Assembly: GCA_964036045.1 (NCBI GenBank)
Contig: OZ038379.1
Coordinates: forward strand, 2,666,001-2,730,000
DNA: 64,000 nucleotides
Direction: 5' to 3'
Source of the DNA: Eutreptiella sp. 'Long Island Sound 2002'
Lineage: Eukaryota > Protista > Euglenida
A program made the position numbers and the translations under genes. Shown here one piece after another: positions 4,040 to 12,556 of this stretch. Each line of letters starts with the position of its first letter. The first letter of the stretch is position 1. The notes beneath the pieces are model-generated. The model ran no database searches, was not told the origin of the DNA, and was given only the letters and a program-made list of their open reading frames with translations.

Positions 4040-4607
4040 GCGTGACAGCATGTTAGCGTGTATCCCATTCCTTTGAGCAACCCCTCCCAACTCCCGATCT
4101 CAAAGCAAGGGCTGAGGCACTTCTGAACCTCATCCCCAAGGGCAGGGGAATAGTCCAAGTCGCAGACTGCCGCCCCCTGTTGCCGCAAAACACAGCACAC
4201 AAGTGGATGGCAGCATTTGTCGCCCTACAGATCCAAGACCTTGTCTCTGCACTCACTCCTTCAGAACAGAAAGGTTTCATTAAAGGGCGGTCAATTTTCG
4301 ACCATCTCTGGCATTGTTTTGGTGATTGGCAGACTGTCACCGAAGGCATTTTCTGCCCCGTTGATTTTTGAAAAGCTTTTGACTCCATCACACATACATA
4401 TGCCAGGTCCTTTGCCTTCCAAATGACATGATAGACCCCATACTTAATCTTTTGCCGGCACCCATTGTGCTGTTGATCCAGGGACAGGTGTGTAAGGACA
4501 AATACTTCTACCCCCGGTCGGGCGTCCGGCAAGGGTGCCCACCGTCCCCCACACTTTTTGCAATTATGATTTCACCTCTGGCTTTCAAGCTACATGAGGC
4601 CTCTCCG
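4040..4607 (+). mobile_element. L1/Tx1-like LINE, reverse transcriptase domains 0-4 (segment A), disrupted
   Basis: Reads LIPKGRG...DCRPL..QN..HKW...QKGFIKGRSIFDHL, VDFEKAFDS and SGVRQGCPPSPTLFAIMISPL. Frameshifts and stops present. Confidence 0.88.
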
Positions 4608-5342
4608 TGGGACAACTTTTAGAAGATGACTCCTCTTTTCAGCTCATAGCCCCCACGTGGAGGGGTGTCTACCAAACCGCACTAGGTGGAAACACGGACC
4701 CCCCGCTACCAATGCACAGTCAGCAACCACCTGGTGTGGTACAGAACTGGTCTACGCTGCAGTGCAGCAAGCATGACATTGAACAATGTGGTTATGACCA
4801 TGCGCCTGTGACACGGGGGCGTATGCGAACCCAGTTTCCGTTGCCTCATGGCCCCCCGCTACCCCGAACAGGCAGCACAGTCTAGGCAGAAGGGTGTGGC
4901 ACCGCCGGGCACCAAGCCATGGCCCCCCCTGTCATTCTGGTGTAATTGGACGCACCACCAAATGTTCGAGTTTCTGTCTACATCCAGCCCCCCCGAATCA
5001 AGGCAAACACTGGACGTCTGGGCGACACTGGCCCGGGCGGGCCTGCCCGCACACCTGCAAGATTTGGTACACACGGCTCTTAGGAAAAAGCTCCAGACAG
5101 GGGAACGTCAACGAGCTTGGAAACCTTTTGCCCCATTGATCACTCCTTGGAAACAATCGCACACTGCATGCACGAATGCACTCTTGTCAAACATGCCTTC
5201 AAGATCATCCAAAAATGCTTCAAGGTGGACATTTCACATATTTTCCTTATGGACACGACATCCACACTCACCACACCTGCTGGTGTTTTGGCCTGGTCCG
5301 CAGTCCACACAAACTGGATCATACAATGTGCCATCAAAAAAC
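4608..5342 (+). mobile_element. Same LINE, post-RT region with CCHC zinc knuckle (segment C)
   Basis: Reads VGQLLEDD..LIAPTWRGVY, ALRKKLQTGERQRAW, CPIDHSLETIAHCMHEC and GVLAWSAVHTNWIIQCAIKK. Ends at the AAAAC junction with the YR element. Confidence 0.78.
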
Positions 5343-5422
5343 GACTGTTAGCTTTGCTAACTGGGGTTTTATATGCCTCCTTTATTTGTTCCAGATTGTT
5401 TTTGAAATTTTGCCTGGGGAAG
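5338..5422 (+). repeat. Split direct repeat A1 (85 bp)
   Basis: Matches 11123-11207 with one mismatch (cctcc/cctgc). Confidence 0.95.
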
Positions 5423-5582
5423 ATGGCGGAATGCATGGAGTTCCAGGACTACCTCCAGGCCAGAGTGCACGACTTTGTGCGAGAGGGGACCCAGCGGCGT
5501 CCCGGGCTAAGGCAAAAATGAGGTTAACCAAGTCCCTTCGCCATCTGGGGGACTCGCGTTCGCAATGGCTCCACACTTTTGC

Positions 5583-6481
5583 CAGTGAGCACCCCGGCTC
5601 GTATGAGCTGGGGGCAGAAGTAGGTTTGTGCATGATGGTTGCGGAAGCAGTTGTTGTGCCATAATGGAGTATCATAACTGAGCATGATGTCATGATATGC
5701 CAATATTGGCTGTCTAACCAGAGAGAAGGCCCTAGCGCTCCACGCGAGGTACGGCATGGTTTGGCAGACTACATTACTGCCCATTTGGAAAAAGGGTAGG
5801 TCTGCCATTCGTAGCGATATCCCATGAAGGAGTGCAAAACGTTTAAAACTGGTAGTGAACGATGCAGGGAGTAGTAGCGGGTCCTTGACATATTGCAGAA
5901 AAACAGTGGAGTGTTGCCAATACAGGAAAGTTTTTGGCTGCGGGAGCGAGTAACCCCCTTCATTTCTGGGGAGGGCAAGGATGTCGTGGGTGAGATCCCA
6001 TGACGTGAGGCGCAGTGCCACGTTATACACTATCTTGAGTGTGCTTATGACACTGTCTGTGGGAAAGACCACCTTGGCTGGGAAGACCAACAGTGGTAGT
6101 ATCCACAGTTTGAGGAGCATGACTCGCTCAGGAAAAGAGAGAGCCCAAGACTGCATGGCGAAGGCACGCCCCAGGGCGTTCTGCAACACGGGCTCGTACG
6201 ATGTATCCTCATTGACATGGCCGAAAAAGACCCCCAGATATGTATATCTGTCAACAATTGGTAGCTTTGTGGGGATTAGCTGGGAAACTTGCACATCTGT
6301 CCACACCCCGTTAAGCAAAAGTGCCGACTTGGAATGATTGATGTGAAGACCTGAATGGTCAGTGAACAGTTGTAACACCTGCATAGCCAGCAGGACAACA
6401 ACCACTGCCTCGGCAGGAGGACACTTAATGATGATCAGGAGATCATCAACGTACAACAGCGTACAACAGTACCGTGATAAG
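5583..6481 (-). mobile_element. Translocated, inverted LINE RT segment B (domain 5 YVDD through thumb and linker)
   Basis: Reads LITVLLY..YVDDLLII...SGLHINHSKS...YTYLGV...LKLWILPLL...EGGYSLP...RAGVLT. A 10-bp tandem duplication (gtacaacagc) lies just before YVDD. Confidence 0.88.
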
Positions 6482-7023
6482 CGGAGCAGAGCGGAGCGGA
6501 GCAGAAGAAGCGCTCATTGAGAACCTCATCGGGTGCACGCTGACAGAGCAGGTCCAAATAAACATGACTACAGGAGCTTTTGAGAAAATCCGTGTGCAGT
6601 CGGAAGGTGGGAATAAAGCCTCAGACCCTGCCTCAATAAGCCTGTTGGAAGGGCAGGCTGCCCTCATCAAGTCCCTCACTGAAAAGGTCAACAGCCTCTC
6701 AGAAGCACCGGCCCGATCGGAGAAAACCGTGCCGCCTCTATGCCTCAAGGAATTACATGACGTGGCCCTGGTATGGAACCACCCTCAATGGGTAACCAGG
6801 GTCCTGTACTACCTCAAGTGCGCGATCCTCGAAGAGGCCCTGCCGCTGGACGCCATGAGAATGACCCCCAAGTGGGATGATGAGGCGCAGAAGCCGCTTC
6901 TTTTCAGCCTCTCGGACGATCAGAAGAAGGATACAATGGTATGGACTGAGGTGGTGGGGACTAGAGGTTCAGCAGGGGATGCCCCCATGGATGGAAGCTC
7001 AGACCCCCCCCCCCCCCCCGGTG

Positions 7024-7130
7024 CTACGCTGCAGTGCAGCAAGCATGACATTGAACAATGTGGTTATGACCATGCGCCTGTGACACGGGGGCGTATGCGA
7101 ACCCAGTTTCCGTTGCCTCATGGCCCCCCG
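7024..7130 (+). repeat. 107-bp exact copy of 4752-4858 inserted in gag
   Basis: Identical by eye over 107 bp. Flanked by the 12-bp direct repeat ccccccggtgct (7014-7025, 7124-7135). Confidence 0.92.
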
Positions 7131-7449
7131 GTGCTGTCCCTTAATAGCTCTGCGGTCCTGATGGTGGAATCTTTCTGGCTTCTGCTCTGGTCCTCCGTCC
7201 ACTGCTACAAGGAACGATACGAGTCGGATTCCACCTCCTCCAAGCAGGCATCGGCGGACCCAGACTTCACCTCAGGCCTGAGTGCGGCAGGGGCGCGGCT
7301 GGTCATGCGACGTCGTTTCAAAATGGTGGATGGAGTGGAGTATTTCGAGGTCCAAAAGGAGAGTGGGTACGGTCGGACTCCACCCCAGTGGGGCCCTGTA
7401 AAACCTGCAAAGGGCACGGGTCCATCGAGAGGCAGTGGGTGTGGAATTG

Positions 7450-9018
7450 CCCCAGATTGGAGTGACGGGATTTGGCGGCCCAGCCGGTGGACATCAATGC
7501 TACAACGGCTGGACCGCTTCAGGAAGGGGGTTTCTGAGCTCGCGCCAACCCATGTGGCTTCCTAGGACGTCATCGACTGGGCGGCGGTGGTGGATGCATG
7601 GCAAATCTTGGGTGAGACCGACCCCACAGAGTGCCCGGCAGCCTGCCTGGTTTCAACGTGGATGCCGTTGACGAGGAGAACTTATACCACCCACCTACGC
7701 CGATTTGCCCATTTCGGGGGCGCTATCCAGCCAGGCGACATGCAGGCGTTGGCGGAAAAGGTCCTCCTCTCCATGTTTGACCAGGGCCAGAAAGCAGCGG
7801 CAGCCAGAGGATGTATATCCGGCCTCAAGGCGGTGGCCACCTTGGGGAGACAAATTATGGAGACTTTCAAAGGCGGCGGTGGATTCCCCGGGGCAGCGAC
7901 AGTTCGGGGGGCCGAACCTCCTCTAGCTTATTGCTGAGTCGTGCACCAGGGTGGGGGAGTGGAAGATATACGCAGCGGCGGTCCTGTCCTTTGCCACGCT
8001 ATGCAGAGTGGGGGAAATCTCGCCACTTCGACGGTCGAACATCTCCAAGGTGGGGATTACGTACCAAGGCATCAAGCGAGACCACCGCCAGATCACACGA
8101 CGACTAGGACCGTACGCGCAGGCTTGGGCTTCATGGCTCCGCCGGATCGCACCGGGTGAGGCACGAGCGTTGGGACGTGCAGCAGACCTCGAAATGGGTA
8201 TGGCCAAGCTCCAAGGAACTGCCAGAGGTGATGCAAGATGGCAGTCCTGGAGACGGGCAGGCGCTACATACCTCCGTTGGTTGGGACTGCCGTGGAGACA
8301 CCTCCTGTGGTGGGGCAGATGGCATAGCATCAAAATTGCACACCTGTACGTGTCTCCCCCTGATGAATTTGAATGTGTGCAGATTACGCGACTGCCTTGG
8401 CCAGCCAACGAGGGAATCCGATGGCGCAAAACTGATATCCGGGATTTGTGGCTGCCCAGCCTAACGGAACTCTTTGAAAACGACGAGGCACTCCGAAAAT
8501 CACCAGCCGACGACAAGCGGGCGCGATCCAAGCACAGCGACGGAGGGGCAGAGAAGGACAAGACCCCGGGAGAAACGGCGGTCGGTTCCAGCCGCCTGGA
8601 GGGAGGAGGATCGAAATCCCGGCGCAAGGATACCCCGGATGCCACAGGGGCGAGGGCACCAGAGGACATCCAGCCGCCCGGGGGCACGAGGTCCCCGGAC
8701 CTAATGCCGGCACGGGGTATGGCATCCAGCGCCTCACAAGAAGCCCCAAGCGCCTCCAAAGGAGCCCCCATCGAAGTTGATGAACAACAGGACGCGGAGA
8801 TGGGTCCCCCGGCACGTCGCGAAGCCAGTGCGGGAGCGAGACCTACCGGGCCAGGGGGAGCGAGACCTACCGGGCCAGGTCTGGCAGGAGGACGCTTCCA
8901 AGGACGACCACGGGGTTTCACGACGTGGAGAACGAGGCCCCGAACCACCTCGGGACTCGGAGCCAAGCACCTGGCAGCGCTGGCTCGGCGTGTGGCCGGC
9001 GGCGCCGGTAAACGATGA
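7450..9018 (+). pseudogene. Tyrosine recombinase of the YR retroelement, with a low-complexity C-terminal tail
   Basis: N-terminal TRRTYTTHLRRF binding-domain motif. Catalytic motifs: LCRVGEI (R 8005-8007), GIKRD, WQSWRRAGAT (HxxR site reads QxxR, 8242-8253), GRWHSIKIAHLY (Y 8347-8349). Stops at 7563 and 7924 plus a frameshift near 7845. Confidence 0.88.
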
Positions 9019-9526
9019 TTGCCCTCGGGAAAGGGCCGTGGAAGGCCTGATCCAGTCGGAGCGAGGTCAGCGGTGGCTGGACGATATTTCTCAAGGCCTG
9101 AGACTGAGTGGTAACCTGAGGGATCTGCTACACCGACAAATCCGTTTTTTGTTCATCCAAGGGGGGAGGGTAGCAAGGGACCTGGGTATGGTGGATGTAG
9201 ATGACCAATTAAGTGCAGCTTTGGACTCCCTGGGAGGAGATGTATGGTCCTGTGTGCTCGGGACTCCACCTCCCCGATTACCCTCCTCCTAAGCCTCGAC
9301 CCGTCTGTGTTGGATACGGGGCTGGGGCCGGTGGGCAATATCCCCATCCCGGAATTCTTGTGGGATTTCCTTGCCCCACTTGACTTTCAAGAGGTGACCG
9401 CTCGTGATTTGGGGGAGATGCCAGAGATCTCCCCAGAGGGTCTCATTATGGCGCGTGCTTTGGTGAGGGACGGGGTCCTCGGGCAATGTGCTGAGGGGGG
9501 GGGGGTCCCCTGGGGCCCAATGGCTA

Positions 9527-10487
9527 CCCGTTCCCCATCCCCAACAATGCCGTGAAGGCTTCCATGATTGTGCATTTGGTGCGCCTGAATAAGTGCCACC
9601 GTTTTGAGCCGCCACGTTTTAGTTTGCCCTCGGTGGAAGATCTTGCTTTCCTTATATAAGCCCACAGTATGGGCCTCCCAAATCTTTCGCTGGGGACACC
9701 CTGCTTGGGCCACCTGAACGACCCCTTCGTGCGTGAACTAGACAGTTTACGTCTTTTGGCGGAACCAGGTGCATCCCTCCTGGCTTGTCACATTGACCTT
9801 ACCAACGCTTTTTGGTCGTTGACTTTGCCAGAGCCTTATAAAAATAGCTTTAGAGTGCGCATCGACGGTAAATCTTACGCTTTTTCGTGCCTTCCTTTTG
9901 GTTGGCGTTTTTCACCGGTCATATGCCAATATGTGCTTGCCTTTGTGACCAGTTTGGTGGATACCAGTGGGGTCATAGTCCTGCACTATTTGGACGATTT
10001 CCTGGTTGTCAGTTACGGAAAAACTAGGGTAAGCTCGGTGTCGCAGCGCCTGTGTGATGCTCTGCGTAGGGCAGGGGCTGTTATCGGCACCAAAAGTGTT
10101 CTGGATCCCGTGCCTGAAATCCAGTGGTTGGGCAAGTGGCTGGTGCTGTGTGGCGATGGGGCGGGGGTCTTCTCTAAGGGGCAGGGGGGGGGGGGGGGGG
10201 CTGCTTTGCTAGGTCTCTGGATCCGTGCTGCGGTCTTACCCCTTACCCACAAACACGCCCGCAGGATCCCTGGTCGATTTATTTGGAGTTTGCGCCCTAC
10301 TGTGGGGTTCGCCCCTTTTTTGAGTGGATGGTGGGCCCACTGTCAGTGGGGGGCGATTTGGCTCCAAAACTGCCCCCTTTCCTTGCTACAAAGCCTCTTG
10401 CACTGCCTCCTTCTTTCATACAGGGCTTGGAAACCGCAGGTACTGCTTCCCCTTAGCATTTGTTGGGGGGGGGGGTCCTGTATGTAG
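9527..10487 (+). pseudogene. DIRS/VIPER-type reverse transcriptase
   Basis: Reads PFPIPNNAVKASMIVHLVRLN, HIDLTNAFWSL, YAFSCLPFGWRFSPVICQ, LHYLDDFLVV (YLDD 9987-9998) and IQWLG. One in-frame stop near 9657. Confidence 0.92.
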
Positions 10488-11015
10488 ACGCCGCCTATGA
10501 TATCGACCGGTTCAGGATTGGGGTCTAGGGCCCGGTTCTGGGCGGACGAGTGTTCCCGTGCTCCCCAGGTGTTTGTACACAACAGGAGGCGGAGCTTGAA
10601 GCCTTCATTCGTGGGGTTAGGCTCTGCATCCGGGTGGGCCGGCCTGTGTGGCGTCTTATATGGGAAATACTCAGCTTTGGAACAAGTGGCCTCCCTGCGG
10701 GCGGGTGCAGGGCTGGGGCGCCAAAACAGGCACCTTTGGAGGTTGTTTTACTTGCTCCGGCGCCTGGAAGGCTCGGTGTACCTAGAATTTGTCCCGGGAG
10801 ACCTAAACCCGGCGGACAGCCTTTCCAGGGTGGACTCAGAGTGGAAGGGGCTGGTGAAGGAGGCTTGTGCAGGGGCGTTGGACCGCCACATGGCTTTGCA
10901 ATCATTCCCAGGGGTCCCCTCCCCGGTCTGGGTCTTGGGTTTCCCGAAAGGGCGTCGAGGGGCAGCCCATAACTTGGATGAAGTGGCCCTGGGGTCAGCT
11001 GAGCCACAGGCGTGA
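10478..11015 (+). pseudogene. RNase H of the YR retroelement
   Basis: Reads LYVDAA, TQQEAELEAF and LEFVPGDLNPADSLSR across frameshifts. Confidence 0.85.
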
Positions 11016-11074
11016 CTTGATGGGAGCGTGGCCCTGGGATTTGTGTTGGTTTTGCCCCCTATATGAACAAAATA

Positions 11075-11127
11075 AGCAGCGAGGAGCCACAATATGCCTG
11101 ATTTGCGTTTTGCTTTGTTCGTAAAAC
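11075..11127 (+). repeat. Split direct repeat B1 (53 bp)
   Basis: Matches 11305-11357 with one mismatch and overlaps A2 by AAAAC. Confidence 0.93.
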
Positions 11128-11207
11128 GACTGTTAGCTTTGCTAACTGGGGTTTTATATGCCTGCTTTATTTGTTCCAGATTGTTTTTGAAATTTTGCCT
11201 GGGGAAG
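11123..11207 (+). repeat. Split direct repeat A2 (85 bp)
   Basis: Matches 5338-5422 with one mismatch. Confidence 0.95.
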
Positions 11208-11304
11208 CCCGCCCACCCACCCGGAATGGTAGGGCGCCCACCCGCCCACCCAATGAACAGCATGTGTTTCTATGGCGTCTGTACACCTTTGTGGATTATG
11301 GTAC

Positions 11305-11357
11305 AGCAGCGAGGAGCCACAATATGCCTAATTTGCGTTTTGCTTTGTTCGTAAAAC
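11305..11357 (+). repeat. Split direct repeat B2 (53 bp), right end of the YR element
   Basis: Matches B1 and ends in gtaaaac, after which LINE coding sequence resumes. Confidence 0.93.
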
Positions 11358-11920
11358 AACAAGCCACGGCGCCGCCGTGGACGGCGTTTTTGACCAAATG
11401 GTGCTCGTACCTGGCCAAATGGGCCACAAACACCCACAGGTTCATCGGTGATGATGACCTGACACTATTCATGCACACCTTGGAGGTTTACATTGAAAAG
11501 CACTACATACCACCGGTCACACTCTCCAGTGCCCCCCCTTGCACCTCCCCCCACGGCGGCGCAATTACGCTCCACAAACCGACACTTGCGTAAGCTGCAG
11601 AGAGCGGAGGAACTGTACACGGAGCTCGCCGAGCTCCGGGCACAGGGATACCTGCTCATTTTCACCGACGGCTCCTCAGAAGATGAGCCCGGAGTCGGTC
11701 GTATCGATGGATACGGTATTGCCACGGAAAGTGGCGTTCGAGTGACCAACTATATGCCACTGCATCTCCGCCAAACCAATAATGCGGCAGAGCTCTACGC
11801 GGCTGTCTGAGCACTACAAATTGTACCAAACACCAGAATAGCCATTTGCACAGACTCTGAGTATGTCCTACTCGGTGCCCAGGGGGCGGCCAAAAGGTGG
11901 CAATGCCGAGGATTTGGCTA
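11358..11920 (+). mobile_element. LINE C-terminal region and N-terminal half of an RNase H domain
   Basis: Reads QQATAPPWTAFLTKW, then LIFTDGSS, RQTNNAAELYAAV*AL, IAICTDSEYVLLG and AKRWQCRGF (RNase H D-E-D motifs). Confidence 0.82.
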
Positions 11921-12145: not shown

Positions 12146-12556
12146 TCATCTCATTTGGCCAGGCATGGGCTGCATGCCCAGAGCGTTCGACAACGCATGC
12201 GTGCTGTCGCACGGCACTAGGGCCGGCTTGGGAGACAGAATGGCAAAGAAAGAAAAGTCTAGGACTTTGGGTAGTAGTGGCGTGTGGGGGGCCTCAGGGA
12301 GGGGTTCATGTTTGGCCTTTTTCACTTCAGGGGTGGCGGGTGTGGTAATGACTTGCAGTGCCGGTGTGGCCTTTGTTGGAAAAAGGGGGTGGGACATGCG
12401 TCCCACTTTTGAGAGTCTGTCGGCCTCCTCATTGTCAGGGACGTCAACGTGTGACGGCACCTTGACCTAGAGGATTTCCCTGTCGGGGTTGGATAACTCC
12501 TGCAGGAGGGTTTGCCAGAGATCAACACAGGCCACACCATTACTGTTGCAGTGGAA
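12146..12556 (-). mobile_element. Inverted C-terminal half of the LINE RNase H
   Basis: Reads HCNSNGVACVDLWQTLL...IL*VKVPSHVDVPDNEEADRLSK (W>stop), the H and last D motifs missing from the plus-strand half. Confidence 0.78.

Follow-up and report, generated by a model that had tools for sequence, protein, structure and literature searches.

The window, by which we mean the entire stretch of 64,000 nucleotides analysed here, carries at positions 5338-11357 an element which is very probably a structurally complete, coding-dead copy of an abundant family of tyrosine recombinase (YR) retrotransposons of the DIRS order, and which lies within another repeat, referred to below as the host repeat. The features of the element and of its flanks are listed in Table 1.

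Table 1. Features of the element at 5338-11357 and of the surrounding host repeat (positions are those of the window)
Feature	Position	Strand	Remarks
Host repeat, left flank	4109..5337	+	Non-LTR-like; paralogues have an RT remnant and RNase H; local rearrangements
Left junction 5-mer AAAAC, core copy belonging to the target	5338..5342	+	The empty site holds one
A1 split direct repeat	5338..5422	+	85 nt; identity with A2 84/85
Hairpin (short inverted repeat) at start of A	5345..5363	+	Core GTTAGC-TTT-GCTAAC; shuffle test
ORF1, gag-like	5423..7465	+	Starts with ATG at 5423, immediately after A1; Cys-His knuckle at the C-terminus; ends with TGA at 7463-7465
Private 904-nt insertion	5588..6491	-	Inverted piece of the neighbouring host LINE
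Private 107-nt segment	7024..7130	+	Duplicate, identical to window 4752-4858
ORF2 remnant (YR - linker - RT - RNase H)	7466..10850	+	Same frame as ORF1, after the TGA
Tyrosine recombinase domain	7560..8400	+	Motifs CRVGE, W-x-x-RR-GA, GRW-x-S...Y
Private 24-nt tandem duplication	8832..8879	+	Repeat comparison
Reverse transcriptase	9660..10484	+	Pfam RVT_1, E 1e-13; YLDD motif
RNase H-like domain	10488..10850	+	Ends DLNPADSLSR; motifs; weak RVT_3 in relatives
B1 repeat	11075..11127	+	53 nt; ends GTAAAAC; 52/53 identical to B2
A2 repeat, internal copy of the joined-ends sequence	11123..11207	+	Overlaps B1 by AAAAC
Spacer X, A2 to B2	11208..11304	+	97 nt; conserved within the family
B2 repeat, right end of the element	11305..11357	+	53 nt; ends GTAAAAC
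Host repeat, right flank	11358..11911	+	Collinear with paralogues

The coding order in this copy is gag-like, an in-frame TGA, and then YR-RT-RNase H, with the YR placed ahead of the RT. The canonical element of the family is about 5.0 kb long (e.g. 5014 nt between the paired ends on both C21 and C16), and consists of A1, a gag-like ORF1 with a terminal Cys-His knuckle, a single in-frame TGA, ORF2 (encoding, in order, the tyrosine recombinase, a linker, the reverse transcriptase and RNase H), and B1A2-X-B2. The presence of an RT/RNase H of the LTR type and of a tyrosine recombinase, together with the lack of a target site duplication (TSD), is that of the order DIRS sensu Wicker 2007, and the split direct repeats follow the arrangement A1 at the 5' end and B1-A2-B2 at the 3' end, the B1|A2 joint being the sequence of the joined ends. 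The 5-mer AAAAC is found at 5338-5342, at 11353-11357, and at 11123-11127, where it constitutes the exact 5-nt overlap of B1 and A2. An initial look in the genome gave 257 candidate 5' ends and 306 candidate 3' ends of the family, and as the A1...B1A2-X-B2 layout is repeated in about 25 other copies, the arrangement of the repeats is not due to chance. No DIRS-1-like inverted terminal repeats were detected in the repeat comparison of the element, which revealed only direct split repeats, and no integrase or endonuclease domain was identified by Pfam across the ORF pieces of the family. The description given in the first-pass annotation of a YR retrotransposon with split direct repeats and defined ends, with A and B copies (85 and 53 bp) each differing by one base, with AAAAC at both junctions and at the B1/A2 joint, and with a gag-YR-RT-RH order (seen here in the domain matches and in its recurrence in six families), is thus borne out in all of these respects. 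A short AB-type derivative, viz. an (A-X-B)x4 array, is also present in this genome.

The identity of the recombinase is established mainly by its motifs and predicted structure. The R / H-x-x-R / W / Y motifs of the YR are conserved, and when its AlphaFold model (pLDDT 78.7) was compared with the PDB by Foldseek, the best 50 matches were all tyrosine recombinases (Cre, IntI, XerA, Tn1549, lambda; E about 1e-6), so that the tyrosine recombinase fold is confirmed at the level of the model. An Atlas feature search with the YR likewise led to Phage_integrase clusters (score 0.99), and one homologue showed a weak match to PF00589. However, Pfam applied to all ORF pieces recognised RVT_1 and a weak RVT_3 only and left the family's YR unrecognised, and a sequence search of the PDB with the YR profile gave no match. 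Because Pfam misses the recombinase of this family, elements of this kind are likely filed as unclassified RT repeats. A search with PF00589 recovered many canonical integrase genes in large clusters, which are unrelated to the element family. The RT profile, when compared with the PDB, matched retroviral/LTR-type RTs (MoMLV, HIV and Ty3; E 1e-20 to 1e-13). In intact relatives ORF2 is about 1155 aa long, several loci having open frames of 1147-1176 aa, and an intact ORF1 (353 aa) followed by ORF2 (1155-1158 aa) is present in L033-L036. Both the in-frame TGA between the two ORFs and an invariant gag Cys-His knuckle are found in five families, and translation of ORF2 would probably depend on readthrough of the TGA, the context of which is TGA-CGG, or else on reinitiation.

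This copy is coding-dead. Its ORF1 is broken by two insertions and a frameshift near 7343-7421, while its ORF2 contains at least five private stop codons (7563, 7924, 8702, 9657 and 10526) as well as at least six frameshifts. The LINE piece constituting the 904-nt insertion is absent from its usual place near 4604-4607, and both borders of this insertion are bridged by unitigs; of the 107-nt segment, about 100 nt are inserted and the last few nt are common to the element. The coding disablements and three local insertions reported earlier are thus all present. However, the fast decay that had been proposed on account of the near-identical repeats is unnecessary. The private substitutions amount to 2.8%, and if all of these had occurred after the insertion, about 7 differences between the repeats would be expected, whereas only 2 are seen; hence a part of the damage is probably older than the insertion or common to copies that were not sampled. 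Every private stop is due to a C>T or G>A change, but such changes account for only 37% of the whole private spectrum, and the rate of private changes at CpG is about twice that at non-CpG positions. Once inserted into the LINE, the copy underwent local rearrangement and suffered point lesions, although some of the lesions may come from the source copy.

The host repeat allows the site to be viewed both with and without the element. In its paralogues RVT_1 is matched only weakly (E 0.004), whereas the match to RNase_H that comes after it is clear (E 4e-15); based on these domain matches only, the host repeat fits a non-LTR element. Eleven of the paralogues are collinear across the site, each with one 5-mer, which is AAAAC in the four closest; as only a single 5-mer is present, no duplication of the target accompanied the insertion. 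Without one copy of the core, the element measures 6015 nt, a multiple of 3, and its removal therefore restores the host frame IKK|QQATAPPW. The earlier statements that the empty site is defined and that deletion restores the frame of the host LINE accordingly hold. Considered by itself, this copy, with two 5-mers in the filled site as against one in the empty site, has exactly the appearance of an ordinary 5-bp TSD resulting from a staggered cut by an integrase or endonuclease, in which case the element proper would be 5343-11352. However, 45-48 other copies are flanked by no duplication: at the right junctions the consensus base is present at each of the five core positions in 45-48 of 48 copies, whereas the contiguous match to AAAAC at 45 independent left junctions ranges from none to complete (0 nt in 2 copies, 1 nt in 16, 2 nt in 5, 3 nt in 13, 4 nt in 7 and 5 nt in 2). 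In view of this pattern, the presence of AAAAC also at the internal B1|A2 joint, and the lack of an integrase or endonuclease domain noted above, a TSD is exceedingly improbable, and this reading is refuted by the junctions of the family. The right junction carries the element's own AAAAC, and the left junction varies with the target. The 'readable 5-bp recombination core' of the first-pass annotation is therefore correct for this copy, in which all five bases are identical, but it does not extend to the family, as the full AAAAC is present at only 2 of the 45 left junctions. What is enriched at these left junctions is a C and the two A's preceding it: C at -1 in 43/45 (p 1e-24), A at -2 in 27/45 (p 9e-8) and A at -3 in 31/45 (p 6e-11), followed by A at -4 in 16/45 (p 0.04) and A at -5 in 8/45 (not significant). 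The target rule is thus that the element is joined 3' of a C, preferentially one in AAC, and that neither a fixed 5-mer nor a duplication is involved; the position of the strand exchange is that indicated by the junction statistics alone.

Six families of such elements, some with intact ORFs, are present in the genome, with thousands of YR matches in 2.28 Gb. Their YRs are 27-54% identical, and they have in common the layout of the split direct repeats, a B end of the AAAC type and a hairpin. The same gene order is also found in the outside contigs L108, L110 and L119, and weakly in L107. It may be asked if the placement of YR before RT could be an accident of nesting or assembly, such as a Crypton-like YR unit lying within a retroelement, or a chimeric contig. 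Local rearrangements do exist at this locus, and a 2026 preprint (10.64898/2026.05.21.726589) cautions about nested or chimeric elements in Euglena. However, at several loci a single open frame of about 1155 aa spans the YR, RT and RNase H, six divergent families and independent outside contigs all have this order, and the private junctions are bridged by unitigs from two samples. We have thus dropped this explanation, the probability of which we consider negligible.

By its architecture, as judged from the published description, the element matches the VIPER-like group. The ORF order is gag-like, YR, RT/RH, and no ORF in the six families of the genome has a Pfam match to a methyltransferase or hydrolase; the host, judging by its 2.28-Gb genome and by the Dam-bearing LTR elements in it, lies outside Kinetoplastea, the range reported so far for VIPER-like elements. 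In the RT tree, which contains unnamed relatives and a gypsy-type outgroup, the RTs of this type form one clade (100/100) apart from the gypsy-type RTs of the same genome. The outgroup, for which alone they were used, consists of four loci fetched in a search of the genome for DIRS-like comparators by means of Dam (PF05869), which proved to be gypsy-type LTR elements with Dam. Dam-bearing LTR elements of this kind have been reported from Euglena gracilis (10.64898/2026.05.21.726589). Membership of the VIPER/TATE lineage, as proposed in the first-pass annotation, should be distinguished from this architectural match, as the elements could instead form a clade of YR retroelements of their own, widespread and for the most part environmental, with a YR-before-RT order that is either of independent origin or ancestral for several groups. 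An exhaustive HMMER search gave 1778 matches, and the 20 non-self matches that were looked up are all unnamed sequences from ENA, Logan or JGI, with none from NCBI and five annotated only as 'hypothetical protein'; word-indexed protein searches with the RT-RH sequence, the YR profile and the RT-RH profile gave only proteins of one ENA assembly and a single JGI match. Further, L119, a distant outside member of the clade, shows a weak match to Dam, a DIRS/PAT trait, and Ribeiro 2019 (PMC6681497) found a poorly resolved RT tree and modular evolution. However, the gene order, the A1-B1A2-B2 repeats, the lack of a methyltransferase in the six families and the Cys-His box in gag all fit the published description of VIPER/TATE, and the weak matches of four of the 20 relatives to DNA_pol_viral_C, which are hepadnavirus-type RNase H matches, echo the placement of the VIPER-like RH in PMC6681497; a euglenozoan host, as proposed in the first-pass annotation, would point the same way. 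On balance, a separate origin is the less probable reading, though one that retains appreciable weight beside a kinship with VIPER/TATE.

A hairpin close to the junction is a new observation of this work. That in A1 is repeated in A2 at 11130-11148, it folds better than shuffled sequences (z -5.7; 0/200 shuffles as good), and a hairpin of 6-7 bp is located 1-3 nt past the B|A joint in all six families, the stem sequences being specific to each family. The conserved hairpin, located within A, probably belongs to the recombination site, its role in this regard being a guess; it could alternatively function in priming, packaging or transcription. The insertion steps envisaged here are based on the model that Goodwin and Poulter are said to have put forward for elements with split direct repeats. 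RNA would be copied into cDNA, with the internal B1|A2 joint serving as the template or bridge for restoring and joining the ends; the recombinase would then exchange strands between the B|A junction (...GTAAAAC|GACTG...) and the target just 3' of a C, usually in AAC, leaving the bases of the target at the left junction and the element's AAAAC at the right. As the B2|A1 circle junction is identical in sequence to the internal B1|A2 joint, joined-end cDNA cannot be revealed by short reads; neither circular nor joined-end cDNA was observed, and among Logan contigs of uncertain kind, no RNA run holding this stretch was found. We also consider, as an unlikely possibility, that the substrate of the recombinase is single-stranded cDNA in folded form and not a double-stranded circle. 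This idea derives from the hairpins, which in each of the six families have stems of their own and lie 1-3 nt from the exchange point, and from the one-sided junctions, where target bases always lie on the left and element bases always on the right, with only C/AAC in common; the exchange of a single strand at AAC, resolved by replication, would give exactly such junctions. Integron attC cassettes and CTX phage integrate by single-strand exchange. The cDNA intermediates of DIRS-1 of Dictyostelium have been reported to be mostly linear and single-stranded (PMC7192593), which makes the idea plausible.

The gag-YR-RT/RH order with split direct repeats has so far been reported from kinetoplastids only, and our literature search found no account of VIPER-like elements in euglenids. 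The range of this layout is thus much wider than the trypanosome relatives, as it includes a non-kinetoplastid genome, where it is abundant and diverse, and also unnamed environmental contigs, and it is possibly old within Euglenozoa. The approximately 45 junctions, together with a clean empty site in a repeated host element, provide the first family-wide target rule that we have found for such elements, and the junction-proximal hairpin is a candidate feature of the recombination site conserved across families.

Of the known systems, the closest in architecture are the VIPER/TATE ('VIPER-like') elements of kinetoplastids (Lorenzi 2006; Ribeiro et al. 2019, PMC6681497), which have the order gag-like, YR, RT/RH, A1 ... 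B1-A2-B2 repeats that can be near-identical, no methyltransferase, and in some species a Cys-His box in gag. Also known among them are a single ORF in the TATE copies of Bodo saltans, short AB-type derivatives (SIRE in T. cruzi, comparable to the (A-X-B)x4 array), and tandem copies of TATE; scaffold L119 likewise holds tandem copies. However, the host in the present case is not a kinetoplastid, a single ORF, preceded by an in-frame TGA, encodes the YR, RT and RH as a fusion, and the repeats, of 85 and 53 nt, fall far short of the 173 and 219 nt in T. cruzi; further, neither a target rule nor a junction hairpin is mentioned in the passages of PMC6681497 consulted. Ngaro and PAT-like elements (Goodwin and Poulter 2004; Cafeteria Ngaros, PMC8547959) are similar in their A1-[ORFs]-B1A2B2 structure, integrase-free insertion by a YR and isolated AB repeats. 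However, the elements described here have the YR in first position, as a fusion with the RT. In Ngaro and PAT-like elements the RT/RH lie ahead of the YR, and PAT adds a methyltransferase. DIRS-1 (Cappello 1985; Malicki et al. 2020) is likewise a YR retroelement, in which an internal sequence matching the joined ends is needed for restoring the ends (PMC7192593). However, its inverted terminal repeats, internal complementary region, overlapping YR/RT ORFs and methyltransferase are all absent here. With bacterial tyrosine recombinases there is no kinship at the sequence level, and the likeness, which would be a functional one only, concerns the fold, the little identity needed between partners, the preferred AAC at the exchange and the adjacent hairpin. 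The CTnDOT/Tn916-type integrases, the integron IntI with attC, and XerCD with CTX phage either tolerate heterology or use folded single strands.

The element, a copy of a tyrosine recombinase (YR) retrotransposon, is a real feature and was correctly recognised by the first-pass annotation. The coordinates and identities of its split repeats A and B, as well as the positions of AAAAC, were reproduced (see the table). A and B are not independent dispersed repeats, as the order A1...B1A2-X-B2, where X is the spacer between A2 and B2, is kept in about 25 other fetched copies. In the 2.28-Gb genome (G000), in which the window occupies C2:2666001-2730000, 257 candidates for the 5' end of the element and 306 for its 3' end were seen at first look, and the canonical length is taken from paired ends lying 5014 nt apart on two chromosomes. 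At one locus on C1 the 3' module of the element forms a short tandem array, with a B repeat and then four head-to-tail A-X-B units of 230 nt; this array recalls isolated AB repeats as seen for Cafeteria Ngaros and also SIRE of T. cruzi. The flanks of four copies (L048, L053, L054 and L077) are identical or nearly so among copies, and the same is seen in the pairs L080/L081 and L022/L089; here either the element was duplicated along with its surroundings or one site of a repeat was entered repeatedly.

Features of the element in the window, of its left junctions and of related loci
Feature	Position	Observation
A1	5338-5422	84/85 identical to A2
A2	11123-11207	84/85 identical to A1
B1	11075-11127	52/53 identical to B2
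B2	11305-11357	52/53 identical to B1
AAAAC	5338-5342, 11353-11357	Further copies of the B1/A2 overlap
904-nt insertion (vs other copies)	5588-6491	Piece of adjacent host repeat, inverted and absent from its usual site
107-nt segment (vs other copies)	7024-7130	Copy of 4752-4858
24-nt tandem duplication (vs other copies)		Within the element
Private stops	7563, 7924, 8702, 9657, 10526	All C>T or G>A
Poly-C and poly-G runs	7005-7020, 10184-10203	Huge contig depth, many false joints
Host-repeat rearrangements (vs paralogues)	4601-4857, 5583-6486, 12159-12535	12159-12535 inverted
Left junction	-1	C in 43/45, p 1e-24
Left junction	-2	A in 27/45, p 9e-8
Left junction	-3	A in 31/45, p 6e-11
Left junction	-4	A in 16/45, p 0.04
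Left junction	-5	A in 8/45, background
A-X-B array	G000:C1:37059376-37060342	
L048, L053, L054, L077	G000:C11:38299830, C9:65373758, C9:65303690, C11:38225715	(Nearly) identical flanks
Phage_integrase ORF clusters	G000:C16:21.81-22.29 Mb, C25:20.65-20.97 Mb, C22:19.45-19.53 Mb, C23:11.93-11.99 Mb	
L115-L118	G000:C8:59945500-59955499, C12:20615000-20624999, C23:28566000-28575999, C2:91075000-91084999	Dam, RT, RNase H
L108		gag-YR-RT
L110		YR-RT-RH in a single 945-aa protein
L119		Dam-bearing ORF, then YR, then RT/RH; tandem units
L107		YR/RT order, weak evidence

Both flanks were used as queries, and paralogous copies of the host repeat were found with these flanks exactly 5 nt apart. All 11 of those fetched are collinear over the insertion site and carry one 5-mer there: the four closest have AAAAC, the rest AAAGC or AAATA. 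The single 5-mer in these empty sites indicates that the element was inserted without target duplication, and its deletion restores the host frame, as had been claimed. All 11 paralogues lack an insertion here, and the position is thus no hot spot. The paralogues contain a weak reverse transcriptase (RT) remnant and then a clear RNase H (RH), which fits a non-LTR element, and the designation LINE would hold only as far as these two features go. Around the element the host repeat is rearranged in comparison to its paralogues. A stretch of about 900 nt is absent near 4604-4607 and is found inverted within the element, and an extra piece of about 145 nt at 4709-4857 matches a part of the host repeat located further upstream.

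If the 5-bp recombination core proposed from this copy were a property of the family, then AAAAC should be present in all flanks. Among the 48 right junctions compared, AAAAC is nearly always the element end. Of the 47 left junctions, 45 of which have independent flanks, the full 5-mer is seen in only 2/45: counting leftwards from the joint, contiguous identity to AAAAC extends over 0 nt in 2 cases, 1 nt in 16, 2 nt in 5, 3 nt in 13, 4 nt in 7 and 5 nt in 2, and the complete match in the window is therefore exceptional. The rule for the target is instead that joining occurs just 3' of a C, usually within AAC. The left junction retains the bases of the target and the right junction those of the element, and this pattern excludes a 5-bp target duplication. 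Random resolution of mismatches within a long overlap region is likewise disfavoured.

Five further families (L032, L033-36, L031, L113 and L114), obtained from G000 or from an ENA assembly containing G000 element sequences, were also taken in. Their recombinases are 27-54% identical to that of the window's family, and in all five the repeats are laid out in the same way, B ends in a sequence of the type GT-x-AAAC, and a hairpin or inverted repeat of 6-7 bp starts 1-3 nt past the B|A joint. The stem sequences differ from family to family, and the folding in comparison to shuffles gives z values of -2.9 to -5.7, with 0-4 of 200 shuffles folding equally well. On this comparative sequence evidence, the junction hairpin is a candidate part of the recombination site. 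The significance of this locus lies in a verified empty site, a family-wide target rule correcting the 5-bp core, and a junction hairpin conserved across families.

No intact copy of the window's family was present among the 30 fetched, but pieces that are open in one copy or another overlap in a single frame. The gag-like ORF1 has its ATG directly behind A1 and a terminal knuckle, C-x2-C-x(3-9)-H-W-x3-C-P, that is invariant in five families. In five families ORF1 is followed by one TGA, beyond which ORF2 continues in the same frame; the context of this codon, TGA-CGG-GAT in two of the five and TGA-ATG in one, suggests that ORF2 may be made by readthrough or reinitiation. ORF2 encodes YR, a low-complexity linker, RT and RNase H in this order, with open frames of 1147-1176 aa in related loci, and one sister family has both ORF1 (353 aa) and ORF2 (1155-1158 aa) intact. 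The RT is matched by Pfam and is of the retroviral/LTR type. The recombinase of the window's family is not recognised by Pfam; a homologue gives a weak match to PF00589, the Arg, His-x-x-Arg, Trp and Tyr positions are conserved in an alignment of 16 sequences, and the best 50 PDB matches of an AlphaFold model (pLDDT 78.7) are all tyrosine recombinases. An Atlas feature search of YR led to Phage_integrase clusters. On several chromosomes of G000, canonical Phage_integrase ORFs of many different kinds (about 500-730 aa, E 1e-15 to 1e-24) are densely clustered; they are unrelated to the retrotransposon recombinase. Very strong Phage_integrase matches (E 1e-45 to 1e-24) are also found in the small contigs C1832, C55, C992, C1610 and C1777, which may be bacterial or organellar sequence within the assembly.

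The window copy carries at least 6 frameshifts in addition to its private stops and insertions. Both borders of the 904-nt piece are bridged by unitigs at single-copy depth in runs of two samples from one study, possibly the assembly's own data. The depth and joints at the poly-C and poly-G runs inside the element are a low-complexity artefact. Near-identical repeats beside several disablements had been read as a sign that decay may have been fast. If all private substitutions (2.8% of conserved sites) had occurred after insertion, then about 7 differences would be expected between the repeat pairs, against 2 seen. Due to this, part of the damage probably pre-dates the insertion or is common to unsampled copies. 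Among the copies sampled, even the nearest share only 92-94% identity with this one.

With an intact ORF2 as query, an exhaustive HMMER search returned 1778 hits, in which the relatives beyond fragments of G000 elements are RT-RH proteins, 30-35% identical, from metagenomes and sequencing runs. Wherever these outside contigs are long enough, a recombinase is located upstream of the RT or fused to it. The metagenome scaffold L119 (9278 nt) contains about 1.6 head-to-tail copies of a 5.7-kb unit. Each unit encodes an ORF of 804 aa that gives a weak match to Dam, a recombinase of this family with 339 aa, and an RT/RNase H of 634 aa; the scaffold represents a tandem insertion or else a circle as assembled. 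Dam methyltransferase is also seen ahead of RT and RNase H in long ORFs of gypsy type in G000 (L115-L118), with an integrase zinc-binding domain in addition in L115. Dam-bearing LTR elements of Euglena gracilis are reported in a 2026 preprint (10.64898/2026.05.21.726589), and these four loci are elements of that kind. In the RT tree, the window's RT groups with its own family, and the RTs of the family and the outside contigs form one clade (100/100) apart from the gypsy-type RTs of G000. Of 20 members, 4 weakly match the hepadnavirus-type RNase H family. No description of such elements in euglenids was found in a literature search. Compared by description, the architecture of the element agrees with what is published for VIPER and TATE by Ribeiro et al. 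2019 (PMC6681497), and the weak hepadnavirus-type hits echo the RNase H result given there.
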